A stretch of 64,000 nucleotides of DNA, taken from NCBI GenBank assembly GCA_024679065.1, contig JAGIQG010000048.1, forward strand, positions 186,001 to 250,000. The letters run 5' to 3'. The position numbers and the translations under genes were made by a program. The notes under the pieces were generated by a model. That model ran no database searches and had not been told where the DNA came from. It worked only from the letters and a program-made list of their open reading frames with translations. Of this stretch, positions 20,891 through 64,000 are shown one piece after another; the stretch's first letter is position 1; each line of letters begins with the position of its first letter. Source of the DNA: Sphyrna mokarran. Its lineage: Eukaryota.

Positions 20891-22679
20891 GCAGTATTAT
20901 TGATTTCAAACGGCCAGACCGTTACAGTCTATATAAACTCAGTATGTGTTTTTAACACCTTTAAGACATATGTAGGAAAAGTGTAAATGTAATATTACAA
21001 TGTGATTAGATTTAAGTAAATGAATGTTTCTGTTCAGTAATTTGAAATTATAGTTGAACATTGAGATTTAATGTAACCTAATTATTTAACAATGTTGGGG
21101 GCAGAAGCAGGTTTTGAATGATTGAAAACTCATTTTATTCGAGTACAAAACAGCTGGCAGGAAAACTAATTGACAATTAATGATAACTTAAAATGTAATA
21201 TTGATGCTGATTAATTCAAAACAAAAGACCTTGAATATTGCACTAGTGTGCAAAATATCATCAGTTTTAGAGAATATTTAATTGTACCAAAATGAATTCA
21301 AAAACAAACCATTTCTTTGCTCGGCTTGATAAAGTGTTTTGCCTTGATTAATTTGTTGATTGGATCTAATTTCTTAATGTAATGTAAATGTTTCCCAGTT
21401 TGTTTAATTCTTACTGTGTTGGGGGACATTGAACTGAGTTGAATCTGCTATTTTGGCTCATTTTCAGCAAAATTACATTTTTACATGAAGTTTTTGAGAA
21501 GTGACACAGGCAGAGAGAAATAATTAAAGGTCGAGAGGAGTTCTGAAATGAATATCAGTTTAATTTAAAATAGGTTAATGATTTTCAGTTGTTGTAAGTT
21601 GACTATTGATCAATTCGAATCCAACAGTTTGAATGGAATTTACAGATTGAAGAGATCTTTCTGAACCGTTGGTGTTTGTTCTGTTTCTCTGAGCTTGGGT
21701 CACTGTGTTGGGACCAGGAATGTGTCTGACTGGTTAAAAAATCTTCTGGTTCCTTCTGCTGTATTTCAGGAAGTGAAATTCTATTTATTTCTTCAATAGA
21801 CTTGTATTTGTGAGAAATGTGCCTGCTAGACTCAGCAAGTCAGAAATTAGATCCCTGAAGCATATTGTGATCGTCAGAGGGAGCAGAAACTTCAGATTGT
21901 AGAGGGAGAATTGGATGATTTTTAAGCAGTGATGTACCAGCCTTGGGAATGTTCGATGACCAAGTTGAAAGTGAGATTTCCTATGTTGTGCTCTGTACTA
22001 CAGCAGTTCCTGAACTGTTTAGGGATAGTTGAAGGGTCAAATTCATTTGTATCTTATTTTTAACCTTCTAAAGGCATTTTCGAGCCATTTGCTTGGCCAG
22101 GATTTTTAACCTTCACTAATTTTTCCTTCACGAAGTGTGGCATCCTTGAATAACTGCAGTCCATATGTCGCAGGCATCCGCCCTGCTGTTAGACAGGAAG
22201 TTCCAGGATTTTGCCCCAGCGATTGTGAAGGAACTGAGATCTTGTTCCAACTCAGGATGGTGTGTTATGGAGGGGAGTTTGCAGGTAGTAGTGTTCATAT
22301 GTAGCTGCTGCCCTGGTCCTATTGGGATGTAAAGGCAGCAGGTTTAGACAGTGTATTATATGGAGCCTTGGTGAGTTGCTGCCGTGCATGTTGTATATAA
22401 TACACCCTGCTTGTTAGTGATGGAGAGAGCAAATAGGATGAATGAGGGCTGGGTGGGGAGCGGGTAAACTTGTGGGTGGCTTTACCCTGGATTGTGTCAA
22501 ATTTCTTGAGGATTTTACAAGTTTATCCCCTTGAGAAGAGAGGAATGTATTCAATCGTGACTGGTAAATGTTTTTCCAACTCTTGCCCCGCAATCCATAC
22601 TGTGCTCGCTTGACAACCCCACTTACTGGGTGAGTGTGTGTGTAGTGACGGTGCTTTTCCAGACTGAATCAGCCAGATA

Positions 22680-24410
22680 GAGATTTACACACTCTCCCAC
22701 ACGTAAATATCCACATATACACACTCATATTCTCTCACACATACATACTCACACTTGTTGTCTCTCTCACACACAACTATACACATGCTCTCTCTCTCTC
22801 TCTCGTTCTACACACTCTCAAATCTGAATACATACTTAGACTCGCTTGCTCATTCACTGTCTTATGCTCCACACACGAAACGCACAAACAACCACACGCG
22901 TTCTGCCTTACACACAGACACACTCTCACACAAACACAGTCATTTTCGCTCTCTCTCTCCCACACTCTCTTATTTATGTTCAAGCTGTCTCTCATTTTTT
23001 TCACACACGCTCTTTCACAATTCCTCTTGCACACACATGTCTCTCTCTTTCTCACACACACCCATGCATATAATTTATCTCTCTTGCACACACTCTCTCA
23101 CACATTCTTGCCCTCGCACACTGGCTCTCTTACAAACACTCTCTCTCAAACACACTCTAACACACCCTCTTAAACGCAGACACTGTCTCTCACAGAAGCA
23201 GATGCGTGCACGCATTCTCCCTCTCTCTCTCTCACACACACACTATCTCTTTCACATTCCCCCTTCCGTATTCTCACTTCCTCTCTCACTCATTCACATG
23301 CTCGCTCTCTCATACAAACACACACATTCTCTCTCTCTCTCAAGATAGATGTCTTTCTTACGCTCACTCCCTTAAACATTACCTCACACATGCACAATCT
23401 TGCTCTCAAACACTGTCTCCCACAAACAGCCTCTCTCTCACATGCACACACTCTCTCCGTCTCACACACGGACACAAATGTAAACACAAACACTCCACCT
23501 ATCACAGACACATGTTCTCACAACAGTTACTTCACTCACACATCCACTCTGTTTAATTTTCACACTTTCTCTCTCACACACATTCTCCCTGCCTTTACAC
23601 ACACACACACACTGAAGAACAGAGACACACTCTCTCACACATAAAGAATAACTCATTAAACACACACTCTCTTTCTCACATATCACATTCTCACATATCC
23701 TGTCTCTCTTCTTGGACACACAGACCACTGTCTCCTACACACATTTACAAAAACACTCATATGTCTGACACTCACACATAAACCACACACAACCTCTCTC
23801 TCTCACACCTAATAAACATCTCTCTCTGCCTCACACAATCGAACACATTGCACACATCTTTCTCACTCGGGTGCAATCCCTTGCACACTTTCAGACACTC
23901 ATCAAACTATTATTTTGTTTCCCAATAGGTACTCCCTGTCTCTCATGCACACAACAGTCTCTTCAACACACACATACCCTTCCTCTCAAGCACACACACT
24001 CTGTTTCACAGACAGACTTTATCTCCTATAGACACACTTCATTTCACATTAACACACACTCAATCACACACTGAAGAACTGTCTCTCTCAAACCCCCCAC
24101 CGTGCACACTCTCCCCACCTCCTCACACACACATGCACACTCTCCCCACCTCTACACACACACTCTCTCACACACACACTTTCAAGAAGGGACACCCTGA
24201 CATAAACAACTGTTCAAACACATATTAATTCTCACACACATTATCATCTCTCACACACTTGCTCTCATGTACACTCTCCCCTCTTGCACACACAGCCCAC
24301 TGTCTCACGTGTGCCAATATGGTCTATCACACACAGGCACTATAACACGCACATTATCTCTCTCTCACACACTTACACCCACACACCCTCTCTCACACTT
24401 TCCATCTCAC
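22680..24410. repeat. Degenerate (CA)n/(CT)n low-complexity tract; mirror 60830-62740
   Basis: Base composition; ORFs here are low-complexity artefacts. Confidence 0.9.
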
Positions 24411-24434
24411 ATACGCCAGTGACAGTTTTTGATA

Positions 24435-25306
24435 ACATAGAATAGAATCATAGGATCCTAGAGCAGAAGGGGGCCATTCAGCCCATCGATTCTGCACCAA
24501 CAGCAATCCCACCGAAGCCCTATCCCCGTAACGTAAAGTATTTACAATTCCCTCTGACACCAAGGGGCAACTTAACGCGGTCAATCAACTAAACCCCGCA
24601 CTGTGGGAGGAAACAGGAGCACCCGGAGGAAACCCAAACAGACACAGGGTGAACTTGCAAACTCCACACAGACAGTGACACAAGTCAGGATTTGAACTGT
24701 GAAGCAGCAGTGCTGTGCCTCCCCACCCCCTCCCGTAACATTTGAATGAAGTGGGATCGAGGAGCCTGATTAATATTCAAGTAGATAAGTTCCAGCGGGA
24801 AATTCTTCTGTTTGGAGTCATTCTTAGCACAAAGCAAGATGGTAATGGTTGTTGGAGGTCAAACATCTCAGCTGAGATATCACTGCAGGAGTTTGGCCGG
24901 GGACTGTTCTGGGACCAACAATCTTCTATCGCTTCATCAATGGGACATTCCATCCTATATTAGATTTACAAGGATGTTCCTGGATTGGGGGGCATGCCTT
25001 AGGTTGAGGGAGCTGGGTCTCTTCTCCCTGGAGAGACAAAGGTTGAGAGGCGACCTGATAGAGGTTTATAACATGTTGAGAGGAATAGATAGAGTGGATT
25101 CTCAGAGGCTATTTGCCAGGGCTGAAATGGTCGCTGCCGTCAGTGGTGGTAGAGGCGAACTCGCTGGGGTCTTTTAAGAGACTTCTGGATGAGTACATGG
25201 GATTTAATGGGATTGGGAGTTAGATAGTTCTATGGCCTGGTAGGTATAGATGTGATCAGCACAACTTGTGGGCTGAAGGGCCTGTTTGTGCTGTAGTGTT
25301 CTATGT
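24435..25306. mobile_element. SINE (- strand, 24435-24720) followed by CR1 fragment (+ strand, ~24830-25306); mirror 59826-60790
   Basis: SINE core GGGAGGAAACAGGAGCACCCGGAGGAAACCC; CR1 motif [22 protein letters not shown]. Confidence 0.75.
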
Positions 25307-26788: not shown

Positions 26789-27085
26789 CGACACCATCTT
26801 CACCCACTGTCTACGGCCTGATCTCCTCCTGTGGGCAACAGAGCTCCGGCTCCATCACCTACGGCTGTTTGGCGATGGATTACAATCCAGATGTCTCCAA
26901 ACTGACCTGGAAGAAAGATGGGCAGACCATCAACTCTGGGTTTAAGACTTTCCCATCAGTGAGAAACACTAAGGGAACCTACACCCTGAGCAGCCAGTTC
27001 ACCATCAGCGAGTCATCGGGAGAATGCCCCAATATTGGCTGTGAGGTTCGACATCTTGACTTTTCCAAGACCGTTCCAATGCCAT
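26789..27085 (+). CDS. IGHM: IgM CH1 exon, copy 1
   Basis: Acceptor TTTCCTAG|; TPSSPTVYGLISSC...YGCLAMDY...TWKKDG...YTLSSQF...IGCEVRH; donor T|GTAAG; in phase with JH. Confidence 0.95.
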
Positions 27086-27297
27086 GTAAGTGTTGTGCAG
27101 CTTGTGTAAAAGAGAAACACTGTGGTTAACATGTTGGGCTTTGGTTATAACTCATTTAAATAGATGTGCATAATCGGGCCCTCTGGATTGGTCCGGTTAG
27201 TGTCTATTGACTGCAAATGCGTTAGTAATACAGACAAAAGTTGAATTGATCCACATCTTCTGCAGGAAATGACTAATATGTTTTGTTTTTCCTGAAG

Positions 27298-27612
27298 GCT
27301 CTCCGCCTCCTATCCCTCCAACCGTTATCCTCACCGTGAGTTCCAGTGAACAAATCTCAAGCAGCAAATCAGCAACCATGGTCTGTTCAATCTTCGATTT
27401 CCAGCCAGGATCAATGACGGTGAAGTGGCTGAAGAATGGACAACGTGTGGATTCAGGAATTGTCACTGTTGCCCCCTGTGAAGTGAACGGGAACTTCTCG
27501 GCCAGCAGTCGGTTGACAGTCTTCGCTGGGGAATGGTACAGCAAAGCGGTCTATACCTGCCAGGTCACTCATGACGGAGTCACCCAGAGTCAGAACATCA
27601 GCGCATCTCAGG
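27298..27612 (+). CDS. IGHM: IgM CH2 exon, copy 1
   Basis: PPTVIL...[12 protein letters not shown]...VKWLKNG...[14 protein letters not shown]; AG/GT boundaries in phase. Confidence 0.95.
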
Positions 27613-28454
27613 GTAAGAGACTCAGAGGACAAAATTTATCATTCCGATGTTAATTGGAATTAGGGATCTATTAAAGTCGATACAACACATAGAACAACTT
27701 CATGCAGTTTGCTGCATTAGGACAATGCCTCCTTCAGAGTTTAATTAGGAAAAACAATTCCTTGTTATTCCTTCATGAGATGTGCATTTACTCCCCAAAC
27801 CCGGGGGCACTTAAATGTCAACCAGGTTGCTGTGAATCTGGAGTCACATGCATGCCAGGCCAGATAAAAACAGCAGGTTTATTTTGCTAAGGAGCATTTG
27901 TGAACTTGGAGGGGTTTAAGAGCAATGGCTTCACGATAACCATTTCCATTTCGAATTATAGATGTTTATAAAATTCAAATTTCACATTTGCAATGATGAG
28001 ATTTGAATCTGTGCCTCCAAAGTCTTGCCCAAGGTTACAAGTTCATTGACAACGCCATATATCACTGCCTCCCCTTGAAAGAGAGCCCCCTTCCGGTTTG
28101 AACTAATATAGTGAGCGAGGTGGCCTTGATGTCAGCTTCTCCTGAGACAGCTGGTAAGGTTTGGAGAGACAGTAGGGGGCAGACTGTTTCACAGCTCAGA
28201 GCACAGGGGTAAAATATTGGAAAGTTTATCCAATATTTTACCACCCTGTTTATAAACCAACGGTCGGTGTTTTTTCCCTGAGTTCAGGATGGTGTATTTG
28301 TTTGGGAATTCTGCAATGCTGATTCGTGGAAATGGTACCGCTGCTACAATATTTAATACAGGGAATCATTTCATAGAGCAAGCTGGTTTTCCATTCGCCA
28401 TGGAAGTTGAAAAGTGATAGTTAGAGATCGATATATTGAAGGCAATCTCGCCTC

Positions 28455-28945
28455 GTAAGAACATAAGAAATAGGGTTGGACGGCCGACTCCTGCTCCTTC
28501 GAGCCTGCCCCACCATTCAATAAGATCATGACTGAACTGAAGTGGATCAGTTCCACTTTCTCCCCAGAACCCTCAATGCCCTTGTCTATCAGAACCCCAT
28601 CTACCCGTGAGTTAAATACATTCAGCGAGGGAGCCTCCACCACTTCAATGAGAATTCCAACGATTCACCATCCTTTGAGTGAAGAAGTTCCTCCTCAACT
28701 CTGTTCTAAACAGCGGCCCCTCCTTATTTTGAGGCTGTGCCCCCTCTGGTTCTGGTTTCCTTTCTAAGTAGGAAGAATCTCTCTCCCTCTGCCCTATCCA
28801 TCCCCTTCATTATCTTATGTCTCTATAAGATTCCCCCCCCTCAACCTTCTGAACTCTAACAAGTACAGACCCAGTCTATTCAATCTCTCCCCATAGGCTA
28901 ACCCCCCCCTTCATCTCCGGTATCAGCCTGCTCAACCTTCTCCTT
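28455..28945 (-). mobile_element. CR1 3' fragment in the CH2-CH3 intron; mirror 55835-56320
   Basis: AAGAACATAAGAAATAGG tail; homologous to 6365-6830. Confidence 0.8.
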
Positions 28946-29012
28946 CAGGATGAAGATTACTGTCCTGCTTCTGAAGAGGGAACTGGGGTTCATTTTCATT
29001 TCTCATTCACAG

Positions 29013-29321
29013 GTCCTGATCCGTGCCCTGATTCCACAGTGAAGATCCAGCCACCCCGAGTAGAGCAGGTCTTACTGGAGGCGACCGTGACTTTAACCTG
29101 CATCATTTCCAATGCTCCTTATGGAGTTAATGTGTCCTGGATCCAAGAGGGGAAGTATGTGAAATCAGAGATTGCCGAAAAGCCAGGAACGAACCCTGAC
29201 AGCGTGATCAGCAAATTAAACACCTCGACACAAGCCTGGCTGAGCGCGGTTGTGTTTGAGTGCGTGGTGAGCCATCAGGACCTGCCGACTCCTTTAAGAA
29301 CATCCATCCACAAGGAAACAG
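29013..29321 (+). CDS. IGHM: IgM CH3 exon, copy 1
   Basis: Acceptor TTCACAG|; PDPCPD...[20 protein letters not shown]...AWLS...[13 protein letters not shown]; donor G|GTGAG. Confidence 0.95.
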
Positions 29322-29344
29322 GTGAGCTGAGAGATTGAGACAAT

Positions 29345-30072
29345 AATGTAGGGTCAATGGCAGCGTTCTGGGGAATGTGGAGGAACAGATCTTGGGGTTC
29401 ATACCCACAGATCTCTGAAGGTTGCCACTCAAGTGGATAGAGCCATGAAGAAGCTTCTAGTGTTAGTGTTTATTAACAGGGGGGTTTGAGTTTCAGAGCC
29501 GTGGGGTTATGCTGCAACTGTACCAGACCTTGGTGAGACCACTTTTGGAATATTGTTCAGTTCTGGTCACCTCACTATAAGAAGGATGTTGAAGCATTGG
29601 AGAGAGTGCAGAGGAGATTTACCAGGATGCTGCCTGGGTTTGGAGGGTAGGTCTTATGAGGAAAGGTTGAGGGAACTGGGGCTTTTCTCTTTAGAGTGGA
29701 GGGGGATGAGAGGTGACTTAGTAGAGGTTTATAGGATGATGAGGGGGATTGATAGAGTGGATGTGCAGAGACTATTTCCCCGGGTGGATGTAGCTGTTAC
29801 TAGGGGGCATGAATTATTAGGTTCATGGTGGGAGATATAGGAGGGATGTCCGAGGGAGATTCTTCACTCAGTGGTTGGGGTGTGGAATGCACTGCCTGCT
29901 GTGATAGTGCAGTCGGACACTTTAGGAACTTTCAAGCGGTTATCGGATAGACACATGGAGCACACCGGAATGATAGGGAGTGGGATAGCTTGATCTTAAG
30001 TTGGGACATAGCTCGGTACAACATCGAGGGGCCGAAGGGCCTGTGCTATGCTGTCCTGGTCTATGTTTCTAT
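29345..30072 (+). mobile_element. CR1 fragment in the CH3-CH4 intron; internally deleted mirror 54840-55430
   Basis: [15 protein letters not shown]...RGDLVEVY motifs and CTATGTTTCTAT tail. Confidence 0.85.
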
Positions 30073-30507
30073 ATAATTGCATCACTGTGTCTATCTCCAG
30101 TGGAAGTTTGCTGGTCAATAGTTAATATTCAGTGCATGAATGGTCTCGCCCCCAACTGGGCTGATGGATATTTTTACGGGGAAGTTTGATGAATGAAAAA
30201 GTGAACTGAAGGCGATGTTATTGGGTTTAGATCGCAAAAGAAGTGAGGAGCCTGATGTGGAGCATAAAAACCAAAAACTAAAATGTGGACCAGTTGGGCT
30301 GAGTGGCCTGATTCTGGGCTGTAAACTTTCCAATCCGCTCCCCGCTCTGGGTTATTTGAGAAAACAATTGTGCTCACCTCTCCTCCAAGCTGGAATTCAA
30401 AAATGGAAATAGTTAAAATCAACAGCCAAACACGTTTTCCTGATATCTAACCAGCATTCATTGTCTCCAGAATTCTCCAGTTTATTGACATTGTACATTT
30501 TCTGCAG

Positions 30508-30899
30508 ATCCAAACCCACGGGAACCGTTGGTCTCTGTCCTCCTGCCCTCGGCAGAAGAAGTCTCCGCTCACAGATTCGTCTCCCCCAGCTGCTTAGTGA
30601 GACGTTTCTCCCCCCGAGAGATCTTCGTCAAGTGGACCGTCAACGACAAGCCGGTGAATCCCGGGAACTACAGGAACACCGAGGTGGTGGCGGAGAACGG
30701 CAATAACTCCTTCTTCATGTACAGCCTGTTATCCATCGCAGCAGAGGAATGGTCCAGCGGTGCTTCTTACTCCTGTGTGGTGGGACATGAAGCCATCCCC
30801 TTGAAGATCATCAACAGAACAGTTGACAAATCCAGCGGTAAACCCAGTTTTGTGAACATTTCTCTTGCACTGATGGACACTGTTAATTCCTGTCAATGA
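30508..30899 (+). CDS. IGHM: IgM CH4 plus secretory tailpiece exon, copy 1 (internal donor for the TM form after 30837)
   Basis: SCLV..FSP..IFVKW...FFMYSLLSI...EEW...YSCVVGHEA; tail [20 protein letters not shown] with N-I-S sequon and penultimate Cys; AGCG|GTAAA donor. Confidence 0.96.
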
Positions 30900-34611: not shown

Positions 34612-34739
34612 ACCCCACCGACCGCACCTGGATTGAAGACAACGAGGACGATAACAGCAACATCTGGACAACCGCTTCCACATTCATTGTCCTGTTCTTC
34701 CTGAGCATTTTCTACAGCACCGCAGTCACTCTGGTGAAG
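34612..34739 (+). CDS. IGHM: IgM TM1 exon, copy 1
   Basis: Acceptor CCCCTAG|; (D)PTDRTWIEDNEDDNSNIWTTASTFIVLFFLSIFYSTAVTLVK, with the antigen-receptor TM pattern WTTASTF..LF.LS..YS; donor AAG|GTGAG; not in the ORF track. Confidence 0.95.
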
Positions 34740-34879
34740 GTGAGATGGTTCAGTTCACTCACATTTCAAACTGGCAGAACAGATTTGACAGATCTCTCAA
34801 TGTTTCACTAATTAAAAACTGTAACATTAATGTCCCACATCACAAACATCTGCTTCATTATTGTCTCTTTATTTTACAG

Positions 34880-34888
34880 ATCAAATGA
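34880..34888 (+). CDS. IGHM: IgM TM2 exon coding part (I-K-stop), copy 1
   Basis: TTTTACAG|ATC AAA TGA; AATAAA signals at 35332 and 35343. Confidence 0.88.
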   Translation: MK

Positions 34889-36585: not shown

Positions 36586-36969
36586 TCAAAATGTTGCCAA
36601 TAGAGATGGGGATGTAGGGACAATGGGGTAGATTTTATCGATTACATTGACACAAATATTTCCTAGGCCTGCATCCAAATCTCAGCCAAATCACAAGAAA
36701 ACATCTCACTAACTTAAACACTAAGCTCTCCAGTAACTGGCGCACTTATAAATTTATTGTGGTGTCCAAGAGGTGTAGACAAAAGTCTGTAGGTAGAAGA
36801 AGGATTGAAATGAGGCCCTCACTGAGTGTTAAAATGGGCGGTACGGGCTTGTAGGGCCGAAGGGCCTGTTTCCTGTGCTGTTCTTTGTTGAGGCAAAGAG
36901 GGATGCAATCTGACCGCGATTCCCCCTTAATAAAACCATGCTGGATCCCCACCTCCAGTTAATATCGGA

Positions 36970-37042
36970 AGGGGTGTAGCTCAGCGGTAGAGCATTTGAC
37001 TGCAGTTTTAAGAGGTCCTCAGTTCAAATCCGAGTGCCCCCC
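36970..37042 (+). pseudogene. tRNA-Cys(GCA) pseudogene
   Basis: Follows the vertebrate tRNA-Cys pattern (GCTCAGCGGTAGAGCATTTGACTGCAG...AGAGGTC...GTTCAAATCC...TGCCCCC), but has an A:C mismatch at the first pair, TTTTA in the anticodon 3' strand and a T-stem mismatch; T-run downstream at ~37071. Confidence 0.8.
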
Positions 37043-40690: not shown

Positions 40691-40691
40691 A

Positions 40692-46812: not shown

Positions 46813-47543
46813 TGTGCCCTTCTAACTTTGTAATTTCCAGTATCTGTGTGTGTGCTCGCCTGAATCTTTGTGTGCCCCTGCATTGACATGTAGCCCTGAA
46901 TCAGTATATGCCCCCTGTAGCTCTGTATACCCCTGTACCTGTGTGTGTGTGTGTGTGTGTGCTTATGTATTTGTGTGTCCGCTAACTCTGAGTGTTCCAG
47001 GACCTGTGTGTACCGAACTGTAAGTGTGTGTGTGTTTATATGTATGTGTATCTGTGTCTGTGTGTGTGTGTGAGAGAGAGTGAGTGAGTGGGTATATATG
47101 TGTGTAGTGTGTACGTATGTGTGTGTGTGTGGTGTGTGTTTATATATGTGTGTGTGTGTGTTTGTGTGTCCCTTGTAAATGTCTCTGCTTTTGTGCCCTT
47201 GTAAGAGAAGTCCTTGAAAACGTCTGACAAACGAAGTACAGAGGACAGAAAAGTTTCCCCACTAATATTCTGAAGCTGATGAACATTTGAGAACTGCATG
47301 GAATGTACAATTTGCAGTCTGAAATAATCCCAACTGCAATCTCCAGACAATATCCCCCTGTGGGGAATGAAGAACACGGTTTATGTGCGGTGTCTGGTTA
47401 TAAAACAAAGGGCGAATTCCTCCTCCTCCTCCTGGAAACTCCAATCCCGGACAATATCGTTCAATATTCCCATTTTAGCCCCAGGTTTTGCAGATGTTCC
47501 CAGCGAGTGACTGACCTTCTCTGAGACCCACGAACAGCAGCGC

Positions 47544-47578
47544 CTGCAGTTACAGTGGGCCGCCACCAGATGGTGGTG
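47544..47578 (+). promoter_or_regulatory. Candidate CTCF site (mirror copy)
   Basis: CTGCAGTTAC-agtggg-CCGCCACCAGATGGTGGTG. Confidence 0.7.
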
Positions 47579-50048: not shown

Positions 50049-50057
50049 TCATTTGAT
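50049..50057 (-). CDS. IGHM: IgM TM2 exon coding part, copy 2
   Basis: Mirror of 34880-34888. Confidence 0.88.
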   Translation of the reverse strand: MK

Positions 50058-50197
50058 CTGTAAAATAAAGAGACAATAATGAAGCAGATGTTTGTGATGC
50101 GGGACATTAATGTTACAGTTTTTAATTAGTGAAACATTGAGAGATCTGTCAAATCCGTTCTGCCAGTTTGAAATGTGAGTGAACTGAACCATCTCAC

Positions 50198-50325
50198 CTT
50201 CACCAGAGTGACTGCGGTGCTGTAGAAAATGCTCAGGAAGAACAGGACAATGAATGTGGAAGCGGTTGTCCAGATGTTGCTGTTATCGTCCTCGTTGTCT
50301 TCAATCCAGGTGCGGTCGGTGGGGT
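50198..50325 (-). CDS. IGHM: IgM TM1 exon, copy 2
   Basis: 128 bp, identical to copy 1, splice sites intact. Confidence 0.95.
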
Positions 50326-53300
50326 CTAGGGGACGGAGACCAGAAATTGAAATTAGATTACTTTATTTATCCCGGGAATGTTATTGTTATTTTTCTGTTC
50401 CCTGTTCTCCTTCATAAACCGTTCATTCGGTCTCTTGTATAGTTTTCAATGTATGTTTACCATTATGTTCAGGACACTGAGTAACCGATCTCTGTAAATA
50501 TTTTCATGCCTGATCCTTATGTACATTCCTTGGACTGTTTGTGTCAGGAAGCACTGAAGATGTTCCCTTGAGAATCAGTTCATTTTGAACTATTTGCCAG
50601 TATCCCTTATTGAAGAATGTTATGATTGATATGGAGAAACTGATGATTGTTCTCACAGATGGTGTCAGATCTGTAACTGTGAATGCTGCTGTTTAAGAGT
50701 TGGGATATAATTTCCGATCTTTGTTTATTTACGGTGGGTTTGTTTAGTAAATCATGAGCTCAATTCAGTTTCTCAACGTGTTTGGCGGTGCGTTGTGCAT
50801 CAGGATAGTTGTGGGTGGATATGACCATTAAAATTCACATTTAAATGTTACTTTCATCATTTGCCTGCCGCTTGTATTTAAGATTGTTTGTTTGTGTGTG
50901 TGTGTGTGTGTGTGAGAACACTTTGTGAGCTACATTAATCTTTGGTCCTGAGTTAAATGTGTGTGTGAGTGTTAATGAAATTGTTCATTTGCCTGTGTTT
51001 GTTGATTTGTGTAGTTGCTGTTTTTGGTTGTATGTTTTGTTCTCCAGATATTGTGGATAAATGATTATTACTGTGTGAAGTCTCTGTGCATTTATTAACG
51101 TCTCTCTTAATGTGTGCACGTGTCTCTGCCTTTTTCAATGTGTTAATTTCTGTCAGTCGAGTAACGTTTCCGTCCCTTTCTGTGTGTTTGTTCCTTCGTG
51201 TATCTGTTAACATGTTACTGCATGTATAGCCATGTTGTTAGTTATTTATAGCGATGTGTCAGTGTATGTATATGTTTCCATGTGTAGTATTGTGTGCTGT
51301 GGTGTTCTGTATGAGCATGTGAATGTTTGCATCCACGTGTTTGCGTTTGTTCATCTATATGCTCTCTGTTCATCTATTTGCAGTGTGTTAATATTGTTAT
51401 CTGTATCTCCCCGTATAAGTGATAATATGTATAACATTGTGGGTCTCTATTCATATCATTTCATTTCAGCGTGAACGTGTGAGAATATGTATTTGTTTGA
51501 GTGCATGCATGTGTTTGTATGTTTTGGATCTGCATCAATGTTATCTGTTCGTATAGCACGTGTGCATACATGTGTTTGCGTTCAGGTCTGTGTACCCCGT
51601 CACATATGTTCAGGTGTGTGTGTACTTGTGTGTTTGTATGTGTTTCTGCATGTGTTTGTACATATTTGATAATTTGTGTGCATTTTTTTGTGCTTTCTTG
51701 TACAAGTACCTGTCTAAAATGTGTAGAGTATAGGGCTAATGGTAGGACTCTTAATAGTGTTGATGAACAGAGGGATCTTGGTGTATATGTGCATAGATCC
51801 CTGAAAGTTGGCAATCAAGTCTATAAGGTTGTTAAGAAGGCATATGGAGTCTTAGCTTTTATTGGTAGGGGATTGAATTTCGGAGCCGCAACGTCATGTT
51901 GCAACTGTACCAAACTCTAGTGCGGCCGCACTTGGAGTATTGTGTGCAGTTCTGGTCCCCACATTATAAGAAAGATGTGGAGGCATTGGAGAGGTTACAG
52001 AGGAGGTTTACCAGGATGTTGCCAGGTATGGAGGGCAGGTCTTATGAGGAGAGGCTGAAGGATTTGAGTTTGTTTTCGTTAGAAAGAAGGCAGCTAAGAG
52101 GAGACCTTATCGAAACACATAAGATGATTAGAGGTTTAGATAGGGTGGACAGTGATAGCCTTTTTCCTAGATGGAGAAAGCTAGCACGAGGGGACATAGC
52201 TTTAAATTAAGGGGTGGTGGTTGTAGGACGGATGTCAGAGGTAGGTTCTTTACCCAGAGGGTGGTAAGGGTATGGAATGCCCTGCCTGCTGCAGTTGTAG
52301 ATGCGCCAAGTTTGGTGCGTTTAAGAGGTTAGTAGATAAGTTTATGGATGAAAAGGGAATGGTTTAGGTTAGAGGGTCACTGCTTTTTTCTAATTGGTTG
52401 GAGCAACATCGAAGGGCGAACAGCCTCTTCTGCGCTGTAATGTTCTATCTGTGTGGGTGTATGCCTGTGTGTTCTGTATATGTGTGGGTGTGTGTACATG
52501 GTGCGTGTGGGACAGAGAGAGACCGAGAGCGAGAGAAAGAGAGAGTATTTGTGTATGGATGTATTTTTGTTTGTAGATGTGGTCCATTAGTGTATTTGTG
52601 GTACCGTGAGTGTTTGTACAGAAATTGTGTGTACTTATGGTCCGTGAATGTGCATTTGTATTTATGAATTTATCTGTGCTTTTTGCGTACGTATTCGTGT
52701 GTGTTGTGTATTTGTGTAAATGTGTCTGTATTTGAATGTGCCTGTCCATATTTCTGTGTGTGAGGCTATGTGTATGGGTTTGTGTGTATATTTATGTCCT
52801 ATATTTGTGTGCATGTGTATTTGTGTGTATATTTGCGCAATTGTGTCCATGTGTCTGTATGTGTGTGTGTGTCAGTGTGAGTATGCGTGTGTCTGTATGC
52901 GAGTGTGTTTGTGAGTGTGTCAGCACGCCCATGTGTGTATTTATAATTCTGACAGTTTTCTGCAGCATTAGCAGTGTGTGTATTTTTTAAACTGTTGCAC
53001 CAAGTTTTACCAACAATCGTTAAATGAATGTGATCCAGAGAACCTGAATAATGGAGCATATTTTCAGAGTTGTGCTGTATAAATGTACTTTATAATGTAC
53101 TGTATAAATGTACTGTGTGAGGGTGTTGTCAGGAGAGTGAATGAAATAATTCATTGATGGATGTCAGGGACAGAACAGTGAAAACCGGGGAGGATTCTAT
53201 TACCTGTTTAAATTTGTATTACGGGAAAATCAATGCCAGCACATGATTAGCAGGAACAGTGTTGAAATAGTTTTGAATTATGTTGCATATGTATGTATTA

Positions 53301-54013
53301 CAATGGTTAAGATAATGATACTTCAACATCTGTAAGAAATTAACGAATTTGTACTGTTGGCAACTGGGTCCTTGTAGCAGACAGCCGTTCCCTTCCAAAC
53401 ACGGGAGAGAGAGCTCAGAGTTTACTTCTCTCTGATGGTTCTAACCATTGAGGAGGTGGAGGGAGAGTGAATTAAATAATGACATTCCCCCTCTTTTCAT
53501 TGAGGAAGTTGTGGTGCATGGGTTAGCTGCTGCTCCTCCCCTCTCTTTGCTGGGTTAGTGGGAATCTAGGATGTTAACAATTTCACTCTCCCTCAATCCG
53601 ATGGGGAGGGTGATGATTTCTCCATGTCTTTGTGTGTGACCCTCACTTCAGTTCCCAGTGGGTTTGGTGCAGCAGTTTAAAGCTGACATCTAAATTAAAG
53701 ACACGGACAATGAGAGAAGCAGGGACACACAGAGGTCAAAATGTGTTTGTCAGAAGTGTTGAAATTATCTTTTCCTCAGCTGGAGGAAAGTCAGTGAAGA
53801 TATTTTGCAATGAACGTGCTCTACTCTAACCCTAACCCGTTGGGAGCCCTGGTTCAGCAATTTTAGGTCCAAGACCTGAGAATATTTGACTCAAATCAAA
53901 GATACTTAATGGAACTGAAAAAAAACCAATTAAACAATTGGGTATTTCATTTCTCGTTAGAGGAAAATGTTTTTATTATTTTTATTGAAGTTTTTAATGG
54001 AAGTGAGTGATTC

Positions 54014-54405
54014 TCATTGACAGGAATTAACAGTGTCCATCAGTGCAAGAGAAATGTTCACAAACCTGGGTTTACCGCTGGATTTGTCAACTGTTCTGTT
54101 GATGATCTTCAAGGGGATGGCTTCATGTCCCACCACACAGGAGTAAGAAGCGCCGCTGGACCATTCCTCTGCTGCGATGGATAACAGGCTGTACATGAAG
54201 AAGGAGTTATTGCCGTTCTCCTCCACCACCTCGGTGTTCCTGTAGTTCCCGGGATTCACCGGCTTGTCGTTGACGGTCCACTTGACGAAGATCTCTCGGG
54301 GGGAGAAACGTCTCACTAAGCAGCTGAGGGAGACGAATCTGTGAGCGGAGACTTCTTCTGCCGAGGGCAGGAGGACAGAGACCAACGGTTCCCGTGGGTT
54401 TGGAT
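54014..54405 (-). CDS. IGHM: IgM CH4 plus secretory tail, copy 2
   Basis: 392 bp open exon; FVSLSCLV...; tail [20 protein letters not shown]. Confidence 0.96.
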
Positions 54406-55454
54406 CTGCAGAAAATGTACAATGTCAATAAATTGGAGAATTCTGGAGACAATGAATGCTGGTTAGATATCAGGAAAACGTGCTTGGCTGTTGATTTTAA
54501 CTATTTCCATTTTTGAATTCCAGCTTGGAGGAGAGGTGAGCACAATTGTTTTCTCAAATAACCCAGAGGGGGGGCGGATTGGAAAGTTTACAGCCCAGAA
54601 TCAGGCCACTCAGCCCAACTGGTCCACATTTTAGTTTTTGGTTTTTATGCTCCACATCAGGCTCCTCACTTCTTTTGCGATCTAAACCCAATAACATCGC
54701 CTTCAGTTCACTTTTTCATTCATCAAACTTCCCTGTAAAAATATCCATCGGCCCAGTTGGGGGCGAGACCATTCATGCACTGAATATTAACTATTGACCA
54801 GCAAACTTCCACTGGAGATAGACACAGTGATGCAATTACATAGAAACATAGACCAGGACAGCATAGCACAGGCCCTTCGGCCCCTCGATGTTGTACCGAG
54901 CTATGTCCAAACTTAAGATCAAGCTATCCCACTCCCTATCATTCCGGTGTGCTCCATGTGTCTATCCGATAACCGCTTGAAAGTTCCTAAAGTGTCCGAC
55001 TCCATTATCACAGCAGGCAGTGCATTCCACACCCCAACCACTGAGTGAAGAATCTCCCTCGGACATCCCTCCGATATCTCCCACCATGAACCTAATAATT
55101 CATGCCCCCTAGTAACAGCTACATCCACCCGGGGAAATAGTCTCTGCACATCCACTCTATCAATCCCCCTCATCATCCTATAAACCTCTATCTGGTCACC
55201 AGTGACCAGAACTGAACATAATATTCCAAATGTGGTCTCACCAAGGTCTGGTACAGTTGTAGCAAAACCCCATGGCTCTGAAACTCAAACCCCCTGTTAA
55301 TAAACACTAACATTAGAAGCTTCTTCACGGCTCTATCCGCTTGAGTGGCAACCTTCAGAGATCTGTGGGTATGAACCCCAAGATCTCTGTTCCTCCACAT
55401 TCCTCAGAACGCTGCCATTGACCCTACATTATTGTCTCAAATCTCTCAGCTCAC

Positions 55455-55763
55455 CTGTTTCCTTGCGGATAGATGTTCTCAAAGGAGTCGGCAGGTCCTG
55501 ATGGCTCACCACGCACTCAAACACAACCGCGCTCAGCCAGGCTTGTGTCGAGGTGTTTAATTTGCTGATCACACTGTCAGGATTCGTTCCTGGCATTTCG
55601 GCAATCTCTGATTTCACATACTTCCCCTCTTGGATCCAGGACACGTTAACTCCATAAGGAGCATTGGAAATGATGCAGGTTAAAGTCACGGTCGCCTCCA
55701 GTAAGACCTGCTCTACTTGGGGTGGCTGGATCTTCACTGTGGAATCAGGGCACAGATCAGGAC
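55455..55763 (-). CDS. IGHM: IgM CH3 exon, copy 2
   Basis: 309 bp open exon, splice sites intact. Confidence 0.95.
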
Positions 55764-57162
55764 CTGTGAATGAGAAATGAAAATGAACCCCAGTTCCCTC
55801 TTCAGAAGCAGGACAGTAATCTTCATCCTGAAGGAGAAAGTTGACCAGGCTGATACCGGAGATGAAGGGGGGGGTTAGCCTATGGGGAGAGATTGAATAG
55901 ACTGGGCCTGTACTTGTTAGAGTTCAGAAGGTTGAGGGGGGGGAATCTTATAGAGACATAAGATAATGAAGGGGATGGATAGGGCAGAGGGAGAGAGATT
56001 CTTCCTACTTAGAAAGGAAACCAGAACCAGAGGGGGCACAGCTTCAAAATAAGGAGGGGCCGCTGTTTAGAACAGAGTTGAGGAGGAACTTCTTCACTCA
56101 AAGGATGGTGAATCTTTGGAATTCTCATTGAAGTGGTGGAGGCTCCCTCGCTGAATGTATTTAACTCACGGGTAGATGGGGTTCTGATAGACAAGGGCAT
56201 TGAGGGTTCTGGGGAGAAAGTGGAACTGATCCACTTCAGTTCAGCCATGATCTTATTGAATGGTGGGGCAGGCCCGAAGGAGCAGGAGTCGGCCGTCCAG
56301 CCCTATTTCTTATGTTCTTACGAGGCGAGATTGCCTTCAATTTATCGATCTCTAACTATCGCCTTTCAACTTCCATGGCGAATGGAAAACCAGCTTGCTC
56401 TATGAAATGATTCCCTGTATTAAATATTGTAGCAGCGGTACCATTTCCATGAATCAGCATTGCAGAATTCCCAAACAAATACACCATCCTGAACTCAGGG
56501 GAAAAACACCGACCATTGGTTTATAAACAGGGTGGTAAAATATTGGATAAACTTTCCAATATTTTACCCCTGTGCTCTGAGCTGTGAAACAGTCTGACCC
56601 CTACTGTCTCTCCAAACCTTACCAGCTGTCTCAGGAGAAGCTGACATCAAGGCCACCTCACTCACTATATTAGTTCAAACCGGAAGGGGGCTCTCTTTCA
56701 AGGGGAGGCAGTGATATATGGCGTTGTCAATGAACTTGTAACCTTGGGCAAGACTTTGGGGGCACAGATTCAAATCTCATCAGTGCAAATGTGAAATTTG
56801 AATTTTATAAACATCTATAATTCAAAATGGAAATGGTTATCGTGAAGCCATTGCTGTCAAACCCCTCCAAGTTCACAAATGCTCCTTAGCAAAATAAACC
56901 TGCTGTTTTTATCTGGCCTGTCATGCATGTGACTCCAGATTCACAGCAACCTGGTTGACATTTAAGTACCCCCGGGTTTGGGGAGTAAATGCACATCTCA
57001 TGAAGGAATAACAAGGAATTGTTTTCCTAATTAAACTCTGAAGGAGGCATTGTCCTAATGCAGCAAACGGCATGAAGTTGTTCTACGTGTTGTATCGACT
57101 TTAATAGATCCCTAATTCCAATTAACATCGGAATGATAAATTTTGTCCTCTGAGTCTCTTAC

Positions 57163-57477
57163 CCTGAGATGCGCTGATGTTCTGACTCTGGGTGACTCCG
57201 TCATGAGTGACCTGGCAGGTATAGACCGCTTTGCTGTACCATTCCCCAGCGAAGACTGTCAACCGACTGCTGGCCGAGAAGTTCCCGTTCACTTCACAGG
57301 GGGCAACAGTGACAATTCCTGAATCCACACGTTGTCCATTCTTCAGCCACTTCACCGTCATTGATCCTGGCTGGAAATCGAAGATTGAACAGACCATGGT
57401 TGCTAATTTGCTGCTTGAGATTTGTTCACTGGAACTCACGGTGAGGATAATGGTTGGAGGGATATGAAGCGGAGGGC
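57163..57477 (-). CDS. IGHM: IgM CH2 exon, copy 2
   Basis: 315 bp; starts (C)[10 protein letters not shown]; acceptor TTCCTGAG|. Confidence 0.95.
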
Positions 57478-57688
57478 CTCAGGAAAAACAAAACATATTA
57501 GTCATTTCCTGCAGAAGATGTGGATCAATTCAACTTTTGTCTATATTACTAACGCATTTGCAGTCAATAGACACTAACCGGACCAATCCAGAGGGCCCGA
57601 TTATGCACATCTATTTAAATGAGTTATAACCAAAGCCCAACATGTTAACCACAGTGTTTCTCTTTTACACAAGCTGCACAACACTTAC

Positions 57689-57988
57689 ATGGAATTGGAA
57701 CGGTCTTGGAAAAGTCAAGATGTCGAACCTCACAGCCAATATTGGGGCATTTTCCCGATGAGTCGCTGATGGTGAACTGGCTGCTCAGGGTGTAGGTTCC
57801 CTTAGTGTTTCTCACTGATGGGAAAGTCTTAAACCCAGAGCTGATGGTCTGCCCATCTTTCTTCCAGGTCTGTTTGGAGACATCTGGATTGTAATCCATC
57901 GCCAAACAGCCGTAGGTGATGGAGCTGTCGGAGCTCTGTTGCCCACAGGAGGAGATCAGGCCGTAGACAGTGGGTGAAGATGGTGTCG
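57689..57988 (-). CDS. IGHM: IgM CH1 exon, copy 2
   Basis: 300 bp (3 nt longer than copy 1, in frame), splice sites intact. Confidence 0.95.
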
Positions 57989-60900
57989 CTAGGAAAAAAA
58001 AATAGCCAATTGAACAAGTTAGACTCTTATTTGTGTTTATTCAGTCAACAAACTTGTTACAAGTAGGTTTCTATAGTAGATATAGCTCTTGGTGAGAAAG
58101 GGATGAAGGGATATGGGAAATAGGCATGATCAGGATATTGATGAGCTCTGTGAATGGCAGCGTAAGCTCAAAGTGCCGAATGGCCTACTCCTGCTTCTAT
58201 CTTGAACGTTGATTGGAATTAGAGGGCCGAAGGGCCTGTACTGCACTGCAATGTTCTATGTTCCATTCTGAACTTATCCCAACATTTCTCCATTGAAACT
58301 TCCATCCACCTTTGAGATTATGTTACTTCTTTCATTTGGGAATCGTCATCTCTGTAGGAACTCAAATCCCTGTCTCCGCCTCCATCAAATTCAGAAGGAA
58401 ATAAACATTCTAATAGTCTCTAAATGACGTCTCATTCATTGGATTAATAGAGAACAGGAAAGATTCTCTCTATTATTTGTAACCATTTGTTTCTCAAACA
58501 ACAGCACTTTGTGATGAAGAAGTTCTCTTCATTCAGATCATCCACTCACCTGATGAAGGAGCTCCAAAAGCTCGTGATTCCAAATAAACTTTAACCCGGT
58601 GTTGGGAGATTCCTTACTGTGTCCCCACCAACCTATCACCGGCATCTCCACACTAGTTTTGGAAATTGCCTGTGTTCAAACTGATTGATGTCCCTCCCTC
58701 TCTCCAACTCACTGCCTCTCACTCCACAGAAAGATTAGTGACTTTGCTTCAAAAATACCTTTGGAATGAATACTTACTGAATGATCAGGAAATTCTAAAC
58801 ACGATTAGAGATTCAAATAAATGCAACATTGAAGGATCACACATTAATAGCAAGAGTTGGCCATTCAGGCCCTGAAGCCTCCTCCATCATTCACTGAGAT
58901 TACACATGAGCTGATTGTGGTATTTGCTCTATTTTGAAACCCCCCCCACTCCGCCCATCCATCACCCGCTCTCTGCCCATTTTCCCCGGCTCTCTGCCTC
59001 TCGTGGTGCCTCTTTTTTCCTCCCATCCGGCTTTCTTTACTTCCACCTGGTTCTCTACACTTCCCTACTGCCCTGTGCCCTCTCCCCCGGCTCTCTGCCA
59101 TTTCCCTCAGTCCCCTATGCTTTCCCTCAGCTCTCTGTCCTTGCTCCTGACCCTCTTTCTCCATTCCCCCCCACAACTCTGACCTTCTCCCCCTGACTCT
59201 CCTGCCCTTTCCCTCAGCTCTCTGGCTTTTCTTCTGCCTCCCTGCCCCTTTATCGTGCCCCCATTTTTCCCCCTTGTTCTCTCCCCTTTCCCTGGTCTCT
59301 CTACTCTTTCCCCTTACTCTCTGCCCTTTCCTCCAGCTGTGTGGCCTTTCCCCCGGCTCTCTGTTCCCCTTCCCCTCAGCCCCTGTCCTTGCCTGGCTCT
59401 TTGCCATTACCCCCTGGCCCCCGAGCTCCCAGCGATTCCCTCCAGCTGTCTACTCTCCCAGGGCAGTGTAGTTTGAGTGAGGATGAGTGATTGAGGATGA
59501 GTAAGTGTGGGTGAGGGAGAGAGTGTGAGTGTAAATGAGGGTGTTGAGAGAGTGTGGGTGAGTGGAGGTGGCTGGATGTGTGAGTGAAGGTGGGTGAGAG
59601 AGAGTTGGTGAGCAAGAATGAATGAATGAGGGAGGGAGGGAGGTTAGTGGAGGAGGCTGAGTGAATGAGGCTGAGGGAATGAACGTGACTGACTAAGTGA
59701 GGGATGAGTCAGGATATGTTACTGAGGGTGGGGTGTGAGTGTGTAAAGTGGAGTGTGGGAGAGTGAGTGAAATTTTTGAGTGAGGATGAGTGATTGAGGA
59801 TCTTGAGTTAGGATGCATGATGTTACATAGAACACTACAGCACAAACAGGCCCTTCAGCCCACAAGTTGTGCTGATCACATCTATACCTACCAGGCCATA
59901 GAACTATCTAACTCCCAATCCCATTAAATCCCATGTACTCATCCAGAAGTCTCTTAAAAGACCCCAGCGAGTTCGCCTCTACCACCACTGACGGCAGCCG
60001 ATTCCATTCACTCACCGCCCTCCGTGTGAAAAACTTACCCCTAACATCTCCTCTGTACTTGCCCCCCAGCACCTTAAACCTGTGTCCTCTCGTAGTGACC
60101 ATTTCAGCCCTGGCAAATAGCCTCTGAGAATCCACTCTATCTATTCCTCTCAACATGTTATAAACCTCTATCAGGTCGCCTCTCAACCTTTGTCTCTCCA
60201 GGGAGAAGAGACCCAGCTCCCTCAACCTAAGGCATGCCCCCCAATCCAGGAACATCCTTGTAAATCTAATATAGGATGGAATGTCCCATTGATGAAGCGA
60301 TAGAAGATTGTTGGTCCCAGAACAGTCCCCGGCCAAACTCCTGCAGTGATATCTCAGCTGAGATGTTTGACCTCCAACAACCATTACCATCTTGCTTTGT
60401 GCTAAGAATGACTCCAAACAGAAGAATTTCCCGCTGGAACTTATCTACTTGAATATTAATCAGGCTCCTCGATCCCACTTCATTCAAATGTTACGGGAGG
60501 GGGTGGGGAGGCACAGCACTGCTGCTTCACAGTTCAAATCCTGACTTGGGTCACCGTCTGTGTGGAGTTTGCAAGTTCACCCTGTGTCTGTTTGGGTTTC
60601 CTCCGGGTGCTCCTGTTTCCTCCCACAGTGCGGGGTTTAGTTGATTGACCGCGTTAAGTTGCCCCTTGGTGTCAGAGGGAATTGTAAATACTTTACGTTA
60701 CGGGGATAGGGCTTCGGTGGGATTGCTGTTGGTGCAGAATCGATGGGCTGAATGGCCCCCTTCTGCTCTAGGATCCTATGATTCTATTCTATGTTATCAA
60801 AAACTGTCACTGACGTATGTGAGATGGAAAGTGTGAGAGAGGGTGTGTGGGTGTAAGTGTGTGAGAGAGAGATAATGTGCGTGTTATAGTGCCTGTGTGT

Positions 60901-61281
60901 GATAGACCATATTGGCACACGTGAGACAGTGGGCTGTGTGTGCAAGAGGGGAGAGTGTACATGAGAGCAAGTGTGTGAGAGATGATAATGTGTGTGAGAA
61001 TTAATATGTGTTTGAACAGTTGTTTATGTCAGGGTGTCCCTTCTTGAAAGTGTGTGTGTGAGAGAGTGTGTGTGTAGAGGTGGGGAGAGTGTGCATGTGT
61101 GTGTGAGGAGGTGGGGAGAGTGTGCACGGTGGGGGGTTTGAGAGAGACAGTTCTTCAGTGTGTGATTGAGTGTGTGTTAATGTGAAATGAAATGTGTCTA
61201 TAGGAGATAAAGTCTGTCTGTGAAACAGAGTGTGTGTGCTTGAGAGGAAGGGTATGTGTGTGTTGAAGAGACTGTTGTGTG

Positions 61282-61486
61282 CATGAGAACTCAGTAAGAA
61301 TTTAGCAACACCAATTATTAATCCAACTGATTTATTTTATAGTAAATCCGCGAGCTTTCAACACTCTTGTGTTTGCGGATTTACTATCAAATAAATCGGT
61401 TGGATTAAAAATTGGTGTTGCTAAATTCTTACTGAGTTCTTACCACCCCAATCCAACGCCGGCATCTTTACATCGTGTTCATGAGA
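61282..61486. mobile_element. Fold-back Penelope-like element present only in the right arm
   Basis: Same family as 15082-15387; flanked by CATGAGA repeats (61282-61288, 61480-61486); empty site at ~23945 in the left arm. Confidence 0.85.
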
Positions 61487-64000
61487 GACAGGGAGTACCT
61501 ATTGGGAAACAAAATAATAGTTTGATGAGTGTCTGAAAGTGTGCAAGGGATTGCACCCGAGTGAGAAAGATGTGTGCAATGTGTTCGATTGTGTGAGGCA
61601 GAGAGAGATGTTTATTAGGTGTGAGAGAGAGAGGTTGTGTGTGGTTTATGTGTGAGTGTCAGACATATGAGTGTTTTTGTAAATGTGTGTAGGAGACAGT
61701 GGTCTGTGTGTCCAAGAAGAGAGACAGGATATGTGAGAATGTGATATGTGAGAAAGAGAGTGTGTTTAATGAGTTATTCTTTATGTGTGAGAGAGTGTGT
61801 CTCTGTTCTTCAGTGTGTGTGTGTGTAAAGGCAGGGAGAATGTGTGTGAGAGAGAAAGTGTGAAAATTAAACAGAGTGGATGTGTGAGTGAAGTAACTGT
61901 TGTGAGAACATGTGTCTGTGATAGGTGGAGTGTTTGTGTTTACATTTGTGTCCGTGTGTGAGACGGAGAGAGTGTGTGCATGTGAGAGAGAGGCTGTTTG
62001 TGGGAGACAGTGTTTGAGAGCAAGATTGTGCATGTGTGAGATAATGTTTAAGGGAGTGAGCATAAGAAAGAAATCTATCTTGAGAGAGAGAGAATGTATG
62101 TGTTTGTATGAGAGAGCGAGCATGTGAATGAGAGAGAGAGGAAGTGAGAATACGGAAGGGGGAATGTGAAAGAGATAGTGTGTGTGTGTGTGAGAGAGAG
62201 AGGGAGAATGCGTGCACGCATCTGCTTCTGTGAGAGACAGTGTCTGTGTTTAAGAGGGTGTGTTAGAGTGTGTTTGAGAGAGAGTGTTTGTAAGAGAGCC
62301 AGTGTGCGAGGGCAAGAATGTGTGACAGAGTGGGTGCAAGAGAGATAAATTATATGCATGGGTGTTTGTGTGTGAAAGAGAGAGACATGTGTGTGCAAGA
62401 GGAATTGTGAAAGAGCGTGTGAAAAAAATGAGAGACAGCTTGAACATAAATAAGAGAGTGTGGGAGAGAGAGAGCGAAAATGACTGTTTGTGTGAGAGTG
62501 TGTCTGTGTGTAAGGCAGAACGCGTGTGGTTGTTTGTGCGTTTTGTGTGTGGAGCATAAGACGGTGAATGAGCAAGCGAGTCTAAGTATGTATTCAGATT
62601 TGAGAGTGTGTAGAACGAGAGAGAGAGAGAGAGAGAATGTGTATAGTTGTGTGTGAGAGAGACAACAAGTGTGAGTATGTATGTGTGAGAGAATATGAGC
62701 GTGTATATGTGGATATTTACGTGTGGGAGAGTGTGTAAATCTCTATCTGGCTGATTCAGTCTGGAAAAGCACCCTCACTACACACACACTCACCCAGTAA
62801 GTGGGGTTGTCAAGCGAGCACAGTATGGATTGCGGGGCAAGAGTTGGAAAAACATTTACCAGTCACGATTGAATACATTCCTCTCTTCTCAAGGGGATAA
62901 ACTTGTAAAAATCCTCAAGAAATTTGACACAATCCAGGGTAAAGCCACCCACAAGTTTACCTGCTCCCCGCCCAGCCCTCATTCATCCTATTTGCTCTCT
63001 CCATCACTAACAAGCAGGGTGTATTATACACAACATGCACTGCAGCAACTCACCAAGGCTCCATACAATACACTGTCTAAACCCGCTGCCTTTACACCCC
63101 AATAGGACCAGGGCAGCAGCTACATATGAACACTACTACCTGCAAACTCCCCTCCAAAACACACCATCCTGAGTTGGAACAAGATCTCAGTTCCTTCACA
63201 ATCGCTGGGGCAAAATCCTGGAACTTCCTGTCTAACAGCAGGGCGGATGCCTGCGACATATGGACTGCAGTTATTCAAGGATGCCCCACTTTGTGAAGGA
63301 AAAATTAGTGAAGGTAAAAATTCTGGCCGAGCAAATGGCTCGAAAATGCCTTTAGAAGGTTAAAAATAAGATACAAATGAATTTGACCCTTCAACTATCC
63401 CTAAACAGTTCAGGGACTGCTGTAGTACAGAGCACAACATAGGAAATCTCACTTTCAACTTGGTCATCGAACATTCCCAAGGCTGGTACATCACTGCTTA
63501 AAAATCATCCAATTCTCCCTCTACAATCTGAAGTTTCTGCCCCTCTGACGATCACAATATGCTTCAGGGATCTAATTTCTGACTTGCCGAGTCTAGCAGG
63601 CACATTTCTCACAAATACAAGTCTATTGAAGAAATAAATAGAATTTCACTTCCTGAAATACAGCAGAAGGAACCAGAAGATTTTTTAACCAGACACATTC
63701 CTGGTCCCAACACAGTGACCCAAGCTCAGAGAAACAGAACAAACACCAACGGTTCAGAAAGATCTCTTCAATCTGTAAATTCCATTCAAACTGTTGGATT
63801 TGAATTGATCAATAGTCAACTTACAACAACTGAAAATCATGAACCTATTTTAAATTAAACTGATATTCATTTCAGAACTCCTCTCGACCTTTAATTATTT
63901 CTCTCTGCCTGTGTCACTTCTCAAACGTCATGTAAAAATGTAATTTTGCTGAAAATGAGCCAAAATAACAGATTCAACTCAGTTCAATGTCCCCCAACAC

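Follow-up and report, generated by a model that had tools for sequence, protein, structure and literature searches.

Two IgM heavy-chain constant regions of Sphyrna mokarran lie tail to tail around a 139-bp spacer, probably through a germline inverted duplication

Cartilaginous fish carry their immunoglobulin heavy-chain (IgH) genes as many miniloci, each composed of variable, diversity, diversity, joining and constant segments (V-D-D-J-C). Here we analyse 64,000 nt of the genome of Sphyrna mokarran (assembly GCA_024679065.1, contig JAGIQG010000048.1, positions 186,001 to 250,000 of the forward strand), called the window below, in which two IgM constant regions stand as mirror images of each other, tail to tail, on the two arms of a large palindrome. 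From its sequence, the arrangement is probably real and probably arose in the germline, when a whole IgM heavy-chain minilocus was duplicated in inverted orientation and the two Cmu clusters came to face each other. This reading is favoured by the mirror geometry, by arms that are distinct and diverged, by an order that stays consistent across the runs of N in the assembly (N-runs), and by the intact genes in both copies.

Results

Geometry of the palindrome

A repeat search found 44 inverted repeat pairs that tile both arms, the innermost of which (44175-44720 and 44860-45405; all coordinates are window positions) are separated by 139 nt. A BLAST comparison of the left half of the window with the right half gave collinear mirror blocks that run from 21416/64000 inward to 44720/44860. 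The original prediction, made from the letters of the window, was of tail-to-tail mirrored IgM constant regions with a spacer of this length and arms of at least 19 kb, and both the inverted pairs and the collinear blocks bear it out. The palindrome consists of three parts:

21416-44720, plus strand: left arm, with the J-C intron, exons CH1-CH4, transmembrane (TM) exons and 3' flank of the left IgM cluster (repeat search, BLAST)
44721-44859, no strand: spacer of 139 bp, single-copy in the window, 40% G+C, not self-complementary
44860-64000, minus strand: right arm, the mirror copy with the second IgM constant region (repeat search, BLAST)

The left arm measures 23,305 bp and the right arm 19,141 bp up to the window end, which cuts it; the left limit at 21416 is merely the mirror image of that end. 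In the outermost block, left and right coordinates sum to 85416. The CH4 exons of the two clusters are ~23 kb apart in inverted orientation, and the spacer begins ~14 kb past the left one. Compared with its own reverse complement, the spacer matches at 34 of 139 positions, and no similarity between it and any other sequence in the window was found. Neither arm-spacer junction has microhomology, as no common bases continue past the arm ends. When sampled 31-letter words from the unique centre (867 bp) were used as a query, eight sequencing runs matched, all as Logan contigs, and the best of them held 0.78 of the words. Of the sampled words of this 867-bp centre, 22%, 12% and 5% occur in three other organisms, all belonging to one study; parts of the centre may be conserved in relatives.

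The exons that identify the two clusters are as follows:

26789-30899, plus strand: left constant region, with CH1 26789-27085, CH2 27298-27612, CH3 29013-29321, and CH4 with secretory tail 30508-30899 (Pfam C1-set, mu-chain alignment)
34612-34888, plus strand: left TM1 34612-34739 and candidate TM2 (coding 34880-34888, 'IK*') (exon search)
54014-57988, minus strand: right constant region, with CH1 57988-57689, CH2 57477-57163, CH3 55763-55455, and CH4 with tail 54405-54014 (mirror of the left exons)
50049-50325, minus strand: right TM1 50325-50198 and candidate TM2 50057-50049 (mirror of the left exons)

The exons were searched singly and not as a joined spliced model. All four C exon translations match the Pfam C1-set family (E 4e-9 to 2e-19), and residues 6-128 of CH4 with its tail align to solved 'immunoglobulin heavy constant mu' chains up to the last residue of those chains (E ~1e-41). 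We take a mu tailpiece together with four C exons to distinguish IgM from IgW and IgNAR. TM1 encodes a hydrophobic span between AG/GT sites, and a GGTAAA donor lies inside CH4. A search for TM2 by simple pattern found nothing, and a looser acceptor scan gave one candidate, located after a polypyrimidine tract. Poly(A) signals of the left cluster are at 35332 and 35343.

Divergence between the arms

The arms are separately evolving copies, differing at 255 of 16,427 aligned sites (1.55%). The differences comprise 161 transitions and 94 transversions (transition/transversion ratio, Ts/Tv, 1.71), and 87 of the 255 (34%) fall at positions that are CpG in one copy, although the 423 CpGs make up only ~3.8% of left-arm bases; outside CpG the divergence is ~1.06%. 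Such an excess at CpG points to germline mutation of methylated DNA and not to sequencing error. There are also 44 small indels, 21 of them in single-nucleotide runs. The substitutions are clustered: 59 pairs of neighbours lie no more than 10 bp apart, where 36.8 would be expected (P=0.0002). Because several of these clusters sit at indel edges, we draw no conclusion from the clustering, which could reflect small conversion patches from third clusters.

Differences extend to the immediate neighbourhood of the centre. In the gap-free 921 bp left of the spacer, two segments aligned with their mirror show 2 of 364 and 9 of 177 mismatches, and minisatellite length differs in addition; the first of these figures agrees with the two substitutions originally counted next to the spacer. 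Since the left 921 bp differs from its mirror, the join is not one molecule read twice. The view that the arms are not a single read folded back on itself thus stands, on the CpG-biased substitutions, the transposon-type and repeat-number differences, and the divergence of this gap-free segment.

At a larger scale, six indels of 95 bp to 4.7 kb separate the arms and the length of a minisatellite differs 4.5-fold. Three differences that had been read from the sequence beforehand, namely a 4.7-kb indel, minisatellite copy number and an element insertion with a target-site duplication (TSD), were all found again:

36586-41299, no strand: left-only block of 4.7 kb, whose edges are a ~55-bp direct repeat (BLAST)
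43999-44345, no strand: 56-bp minisatellite of the left arm, 6.2 copies, beginning 364 bp left of the spacer (tandem repeat search)
45235-46813, no strand: 56-bp minisatellite of the right arm, in mirror orientation, 28.2 copies (tandem repeat search)
61289-61474, no strand: right-only insertion of ~174 bp with 66-nt hairpin arms and a 12-bp TSD (1 mismatch) (arm alignment)

The left-only block contains two extra copies of a ~340-bp segment of its flank, one direct (38018-38363) and one inverted (40688-41037), the collinear copy being at 41280-41618. It also carries a fragment of a long interspersed nuclear element (LINE) and a tandem array (39189-39374) with a 49-bp (96-bp) period and a 94-98% match. 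Elsewhere, LINE 3' fragments have lost 95 bp in the left arm and 141 bp in the right, and short-repeat tracts in the J-C intron differ in length between the arms.

Some features of these repeats deserve separate mention. The inverted copy of the 340-bp segment (40688-41037) and the resident copy form a small palindrome of their own with a spacer of ~240 bp, and the left-only block is not a plain insertion. The right minisatellite has a higher-order period of 447 bp (8 units) with a 96% match. A single LINE family is present in many fragments, representing the reverse-transcriptase end and the 3' tail, at 7354-8377 and 51717-52448 and near 749, 8906, 24812, 29553 and 32572. Two deletions specific to one arm fall in fragments from this family.

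Coding differences between the two constant regions

Both copies are free of stops and retain every AG/GT splice site. Left and right exons differ by 5 substitutions and a 3-bp in-frame indel in CH1, 5 substitutions in CH2, 9 in CH3, 4 in CH4 with its tail and 0 in TM1, for a total of 23 substitutions in 1441 bp (1.6%), so our recount over this length agrees with the figure first proposed. Seventeen of the changes are non-synonymous and 6 synonymous (ratio of non-synonymous to synonymous rates, dN/dS, 0.85), and at the protein level 17 amino-acid changes and the insertion of one residue set the C regions apart. In CH1 and CH2 every one of the 10 changes is non-synonymous, which is not significant against the ~75% expected. 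At this dN/dS, the coding exons would seem to drift at about the neutral rate. As exonic divergence (1.6%) equals intronic divergence, the two copies appear to be drifting or diversifying and not to be held alike, and their 17 residue changes and one inserted residue should make transcripts of the two C regions distinguishable in RNA data. Four of the five CH2 substitutions are packed into 25 bp at the exon start (27300-27324), where they alter four residues.

Homogenisation between the arms

The suggestion that arm-to-arm gene conversion keeps the centre homogeneous is not supported. Two mismatches in 364 sites against a mean of 1.55% give a binomial P of 0.078, and up to 921 bp from the spacer 11 of 541 aligned sites are mismatched (2.0%). 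Plotted against distance, arm identity has no trend along the arm, with per-kb divergence rates of 0.5% to 2.9%. The most homogeneous stretch lies far out:

23383-24986, no strand: most homogeneous inter-arm tract, in the J-C intron, 5 mismatches in 1600 sites (permutation P=0.002, 1000 permutations)

This is the only significant low-divergence tract, it is ~20 kb from the centre, and it includes the longest identical run between the arms (561 bp, P=0.037). It may be one conversion patch, and there is no general or centre-specific homogenisation. A gene-conversion-maintained palindrome of the sex-chromosome type was considered and rejected, as it calls for near-99.9% identity or a conversion gradient, and here 1.55% of sites differ.

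N-runs in the left arm

Close to the centre, the left arm is interrupted by a tract that has a much shorter counterpart on the right:

42477-43799, no strand: CA-rich low-complexity tract with four N-runs; its mirror is the 192-bp GT-rich interval 47012-47203

Separated by islands of 27-238 bp, the N-runs count 162, 344, 215 and 263 N and occupy the stretch 921-2244 bp to the left of the spacer; no coding frame spans them. On one flank, 41300-42476 mirrors 48380-47204, and on the other, 43800-43976 mirrors 47011-46833. The three islands are 85%, 90% and 94% A+C, and the reverse complement of the 192-bp right-arm interval is 78%. With collinear flanks and a composition that the mirror leads one to expect, order and orientation across the N-runs are consistent. 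The N-runs appear to sit within one expanded CA-rich tract that is common to both arms, 1323 bp long on the left with the N-runs included and 192 bp on the right.

Variable, diversity and joining segments of the left cluster

Judged by its segments, the left, plus-strand unit would be a complete IgM heavy-chain minilocus. Its rearranging part is compact:

16570-18090, plus strand: V-D-D-J part of the left cluster (V-set match, scan for recombination signal sequences, RSS)

The VH open frame (16570-16857) matches Pfam V-set (E 9e-17) and is followed by a 23-spacer RSS with the heptamer CACAGCG. D1 (~17251-17267) is flanked by a 12-RSS and a 22-RSS. D2 follows a 12-RSS heptamer at 17619-17625, and the scan picked up no 3' RSS for it. 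J comes after a 23-RSS heptamer at 18026-18032. VH, D1, D2 and JH thus fall within ~1.5 kb, and the J-C intron is 8.7 kb long. The VH RSS (16858-16896) has a nonamer with 3 mismatches and a heptamer, CACAGCG, that departs from the consensus at one position, and this signal may be weak. An orphan RSS of J polarity is found at 19255 in the J-C intron, 1.2 kb past J, with a heptamer, a 22-bp spacer and a nonamer with 2 mismatches.

The V-D-D-J of the right cluster falls beyond the window. By the coordinate sum of 85416, the mirror of the orphan RSS is predicted at 66161 and that of a site ~315 bp past J at ~67016.

Discussion

Assembly error or duplication

Several observations weigh against a germline inverted duplication as we read it. 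The 21 kb of left arm are linked to the centre only through the four N-runs, 139 bp is a very short spacer if a palindrome of at least 19 kb is to be stable, and the lack of junction microhomology means that the sequence singles out no mechanism. Microhomology of 1-4 bp would not be recognisable now, because the arms have diverged by 1.55%.

The N-runs invite the explanation that scaffolding or gap closing wrongly attached a separate paralogous IgM cluster across them, in which case both clusters would be real but not tail-to-tail neighbours, and the right contig would end in a palindrome with arms of ~0.9 kb. The N-runs at 42477-43799 do cut 21 kb of the left arm off from the centre. However, the left arm breaks off and resumes exactly at the mirror-predicted positions 47204 and 47011, and the islands have the CA-rich composition expected from the mirror; chance would have to reproduce both. 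Four N-runs of odd length with islands of 27-238 bp are also unlike one scaffold join, and we consider an error of this kind unlikely. It is quite improbable, too, that two haplotypes of a single IgM cluster were mis-joined in inverted orientation to make a false duplication. The arms are alike and collinear, there are N-runs near the join, and immune loci can be highly polymorphic, but this would require two alleles to differ by 1.55% in sequence, by six indels that range from 95 bp to 4.7 kb, and by a 4.5-fold minisatellite length. Shark heterozygosity is a few per thousand, and 1.55% is far above it. Nor would a mis-join create a unique 139-bp spacer in gap-free sequence (43800 to 64000) with inverted flanks on both sides.

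Palindromes with short spacers are typical of fold-back chimeric long reads, in which a missed adapter or a template switch in the library turns the contig round. Reads of this type give identical arms, yet here the differences begin in the first kilobase and follow a biological substitution spectrum, and ordinary mixed sequence makes up the 139-bp spacer; we consider such a read a very remote prospect. A fold-back artefact of the assembly is excluded by the Ts/Tv of 1.71, the 34% of differences at CpG, the TSD insertion, the 4.7-kb block and minisatellite copy numbers of 6 and 28.

Origin of the pair

The inverted copies are joined through a short unique spacer, a product expected of fold-back priming, template switching or breakage-replication/fusion, and an origin of the fold-back type is plausible for the inverted duplication. 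The pair may have been born in one event of the fold-back, template-switch or breakage-replication-fusion type, possibly set off in or close to the minisatellite that lies 364 bp from the centre, a plausible site of breakage or stalling. The copies would then have evolved almost independently, with at most local conversion patches between them. The left-only block contains a second, small inverted copy of local sequence. At 1.55% divergence the event would be old. Elasmobranch rates are slow, and on that basis our guess, which is not a computed age, is millions of years.

Implications

It is an old question, out of reach before chromosome-level assemblies, how sharks came by their tens to hundreds of Ig miniloci and how these stay separate. 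An intact mirror pair with a 139-bp centre supplies a concrete duplication mechanism to test. That inverted duplication is a regular way of multiplying IgM clusters in this cartilaginous fish is a tentative idea, and we would sooner doubt it than not. If it were true, the inverted-duplication architecture claimed as unique to avian IGH would also be found at the base of jawed vertebrates, and mirror geometry would allow an inversion during inter-cluster switching to trade C regions between neighbouring clusters. The pair itself bears on the claim that inversion-rich IGH architecture occurs in birds alone.

According to PMC5192425, V(D)J joining is confined to single clusters, but switching does take place from one cluster to another. 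Since the J-C introns of the two clusters described here are mutually inverted, homologous or AID-switch exchange between these introns would not delete DNA; it would invert what lies between them, so that the VDJ units swap their C regions. Such a C-region swap by inversional exchange could operate between mirror clusters. The locus is in this respect a natural experiment, in which convergent clusters lying close together may prove to be excluded, co-expressed or exchanged.

Comparison with known systems

In gene content, the locus resembles the multi-cluster IgH of cartilaginous fish, for each of its clusters would likewise have one VH, D1, D2 and JH ahead of four Cmu exons that end in a secretory tail and are followed by TM exons. 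The ampliconic palindromes of primate sex chromosomes have arms that are >99.9% identical through gene conversion, and spacers of kilobase scale. Like them, the palindrome described here has many-kb arms with intact genes around a unique spacer. Unlike them, it has 98.45% identity, no homogenisation gradient and a spacer of only 139 bp.

The spacing of the clusters differs from what is reported for the nurse shark. Nurse-shark miniloci are at least 120 kb apart, with linkage that is mostly unknown (PMC2435157), whereas the two CH4 exons here are ~23 kb apart and inverted. Clusters and the way they are linked on chromosomes are described in the available text of PMC5192425 and in section 6 of PMC12227049, where mirror-image pairs do not appear; the latter section maps IgH clusters in four elasmobranchs and, in the portion available, does not mention orientation. 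For the bamboo shark, 37 IgM clusters are given without orientation in the accessible part of PMC8692893. A literature search, mostly without subscription journals, found no description of palindromic or tail-to-tail shark IgM clusters.

[quoted passage not shown] In both cases an inverted duplication has copied Ig gene segments around a non-palindromic centre. The avian units in that preprint are mostly <5 kb, consist of V (pseudo)genes and are tied to somatic gene conversion, whereas here the arms are at least 19 kb and the unit is a whole V-D-D-J-C cluster. Products of breakage-fusion-bridge cycles or of breakage-replication/fusion (PMC12807874) likewise have inverted duplications and closely spaced fold-backs, but those products are somatic and come from cancer and cell models, while the S. 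mokarran pair would be germline, old (1.55% diverged) and low-copy. Multi-cluster IgH and inverted duplication are thus both known kinds of arrangement, and the literature found suggests that their meeting in a mirror-image shark IgM pair is new.

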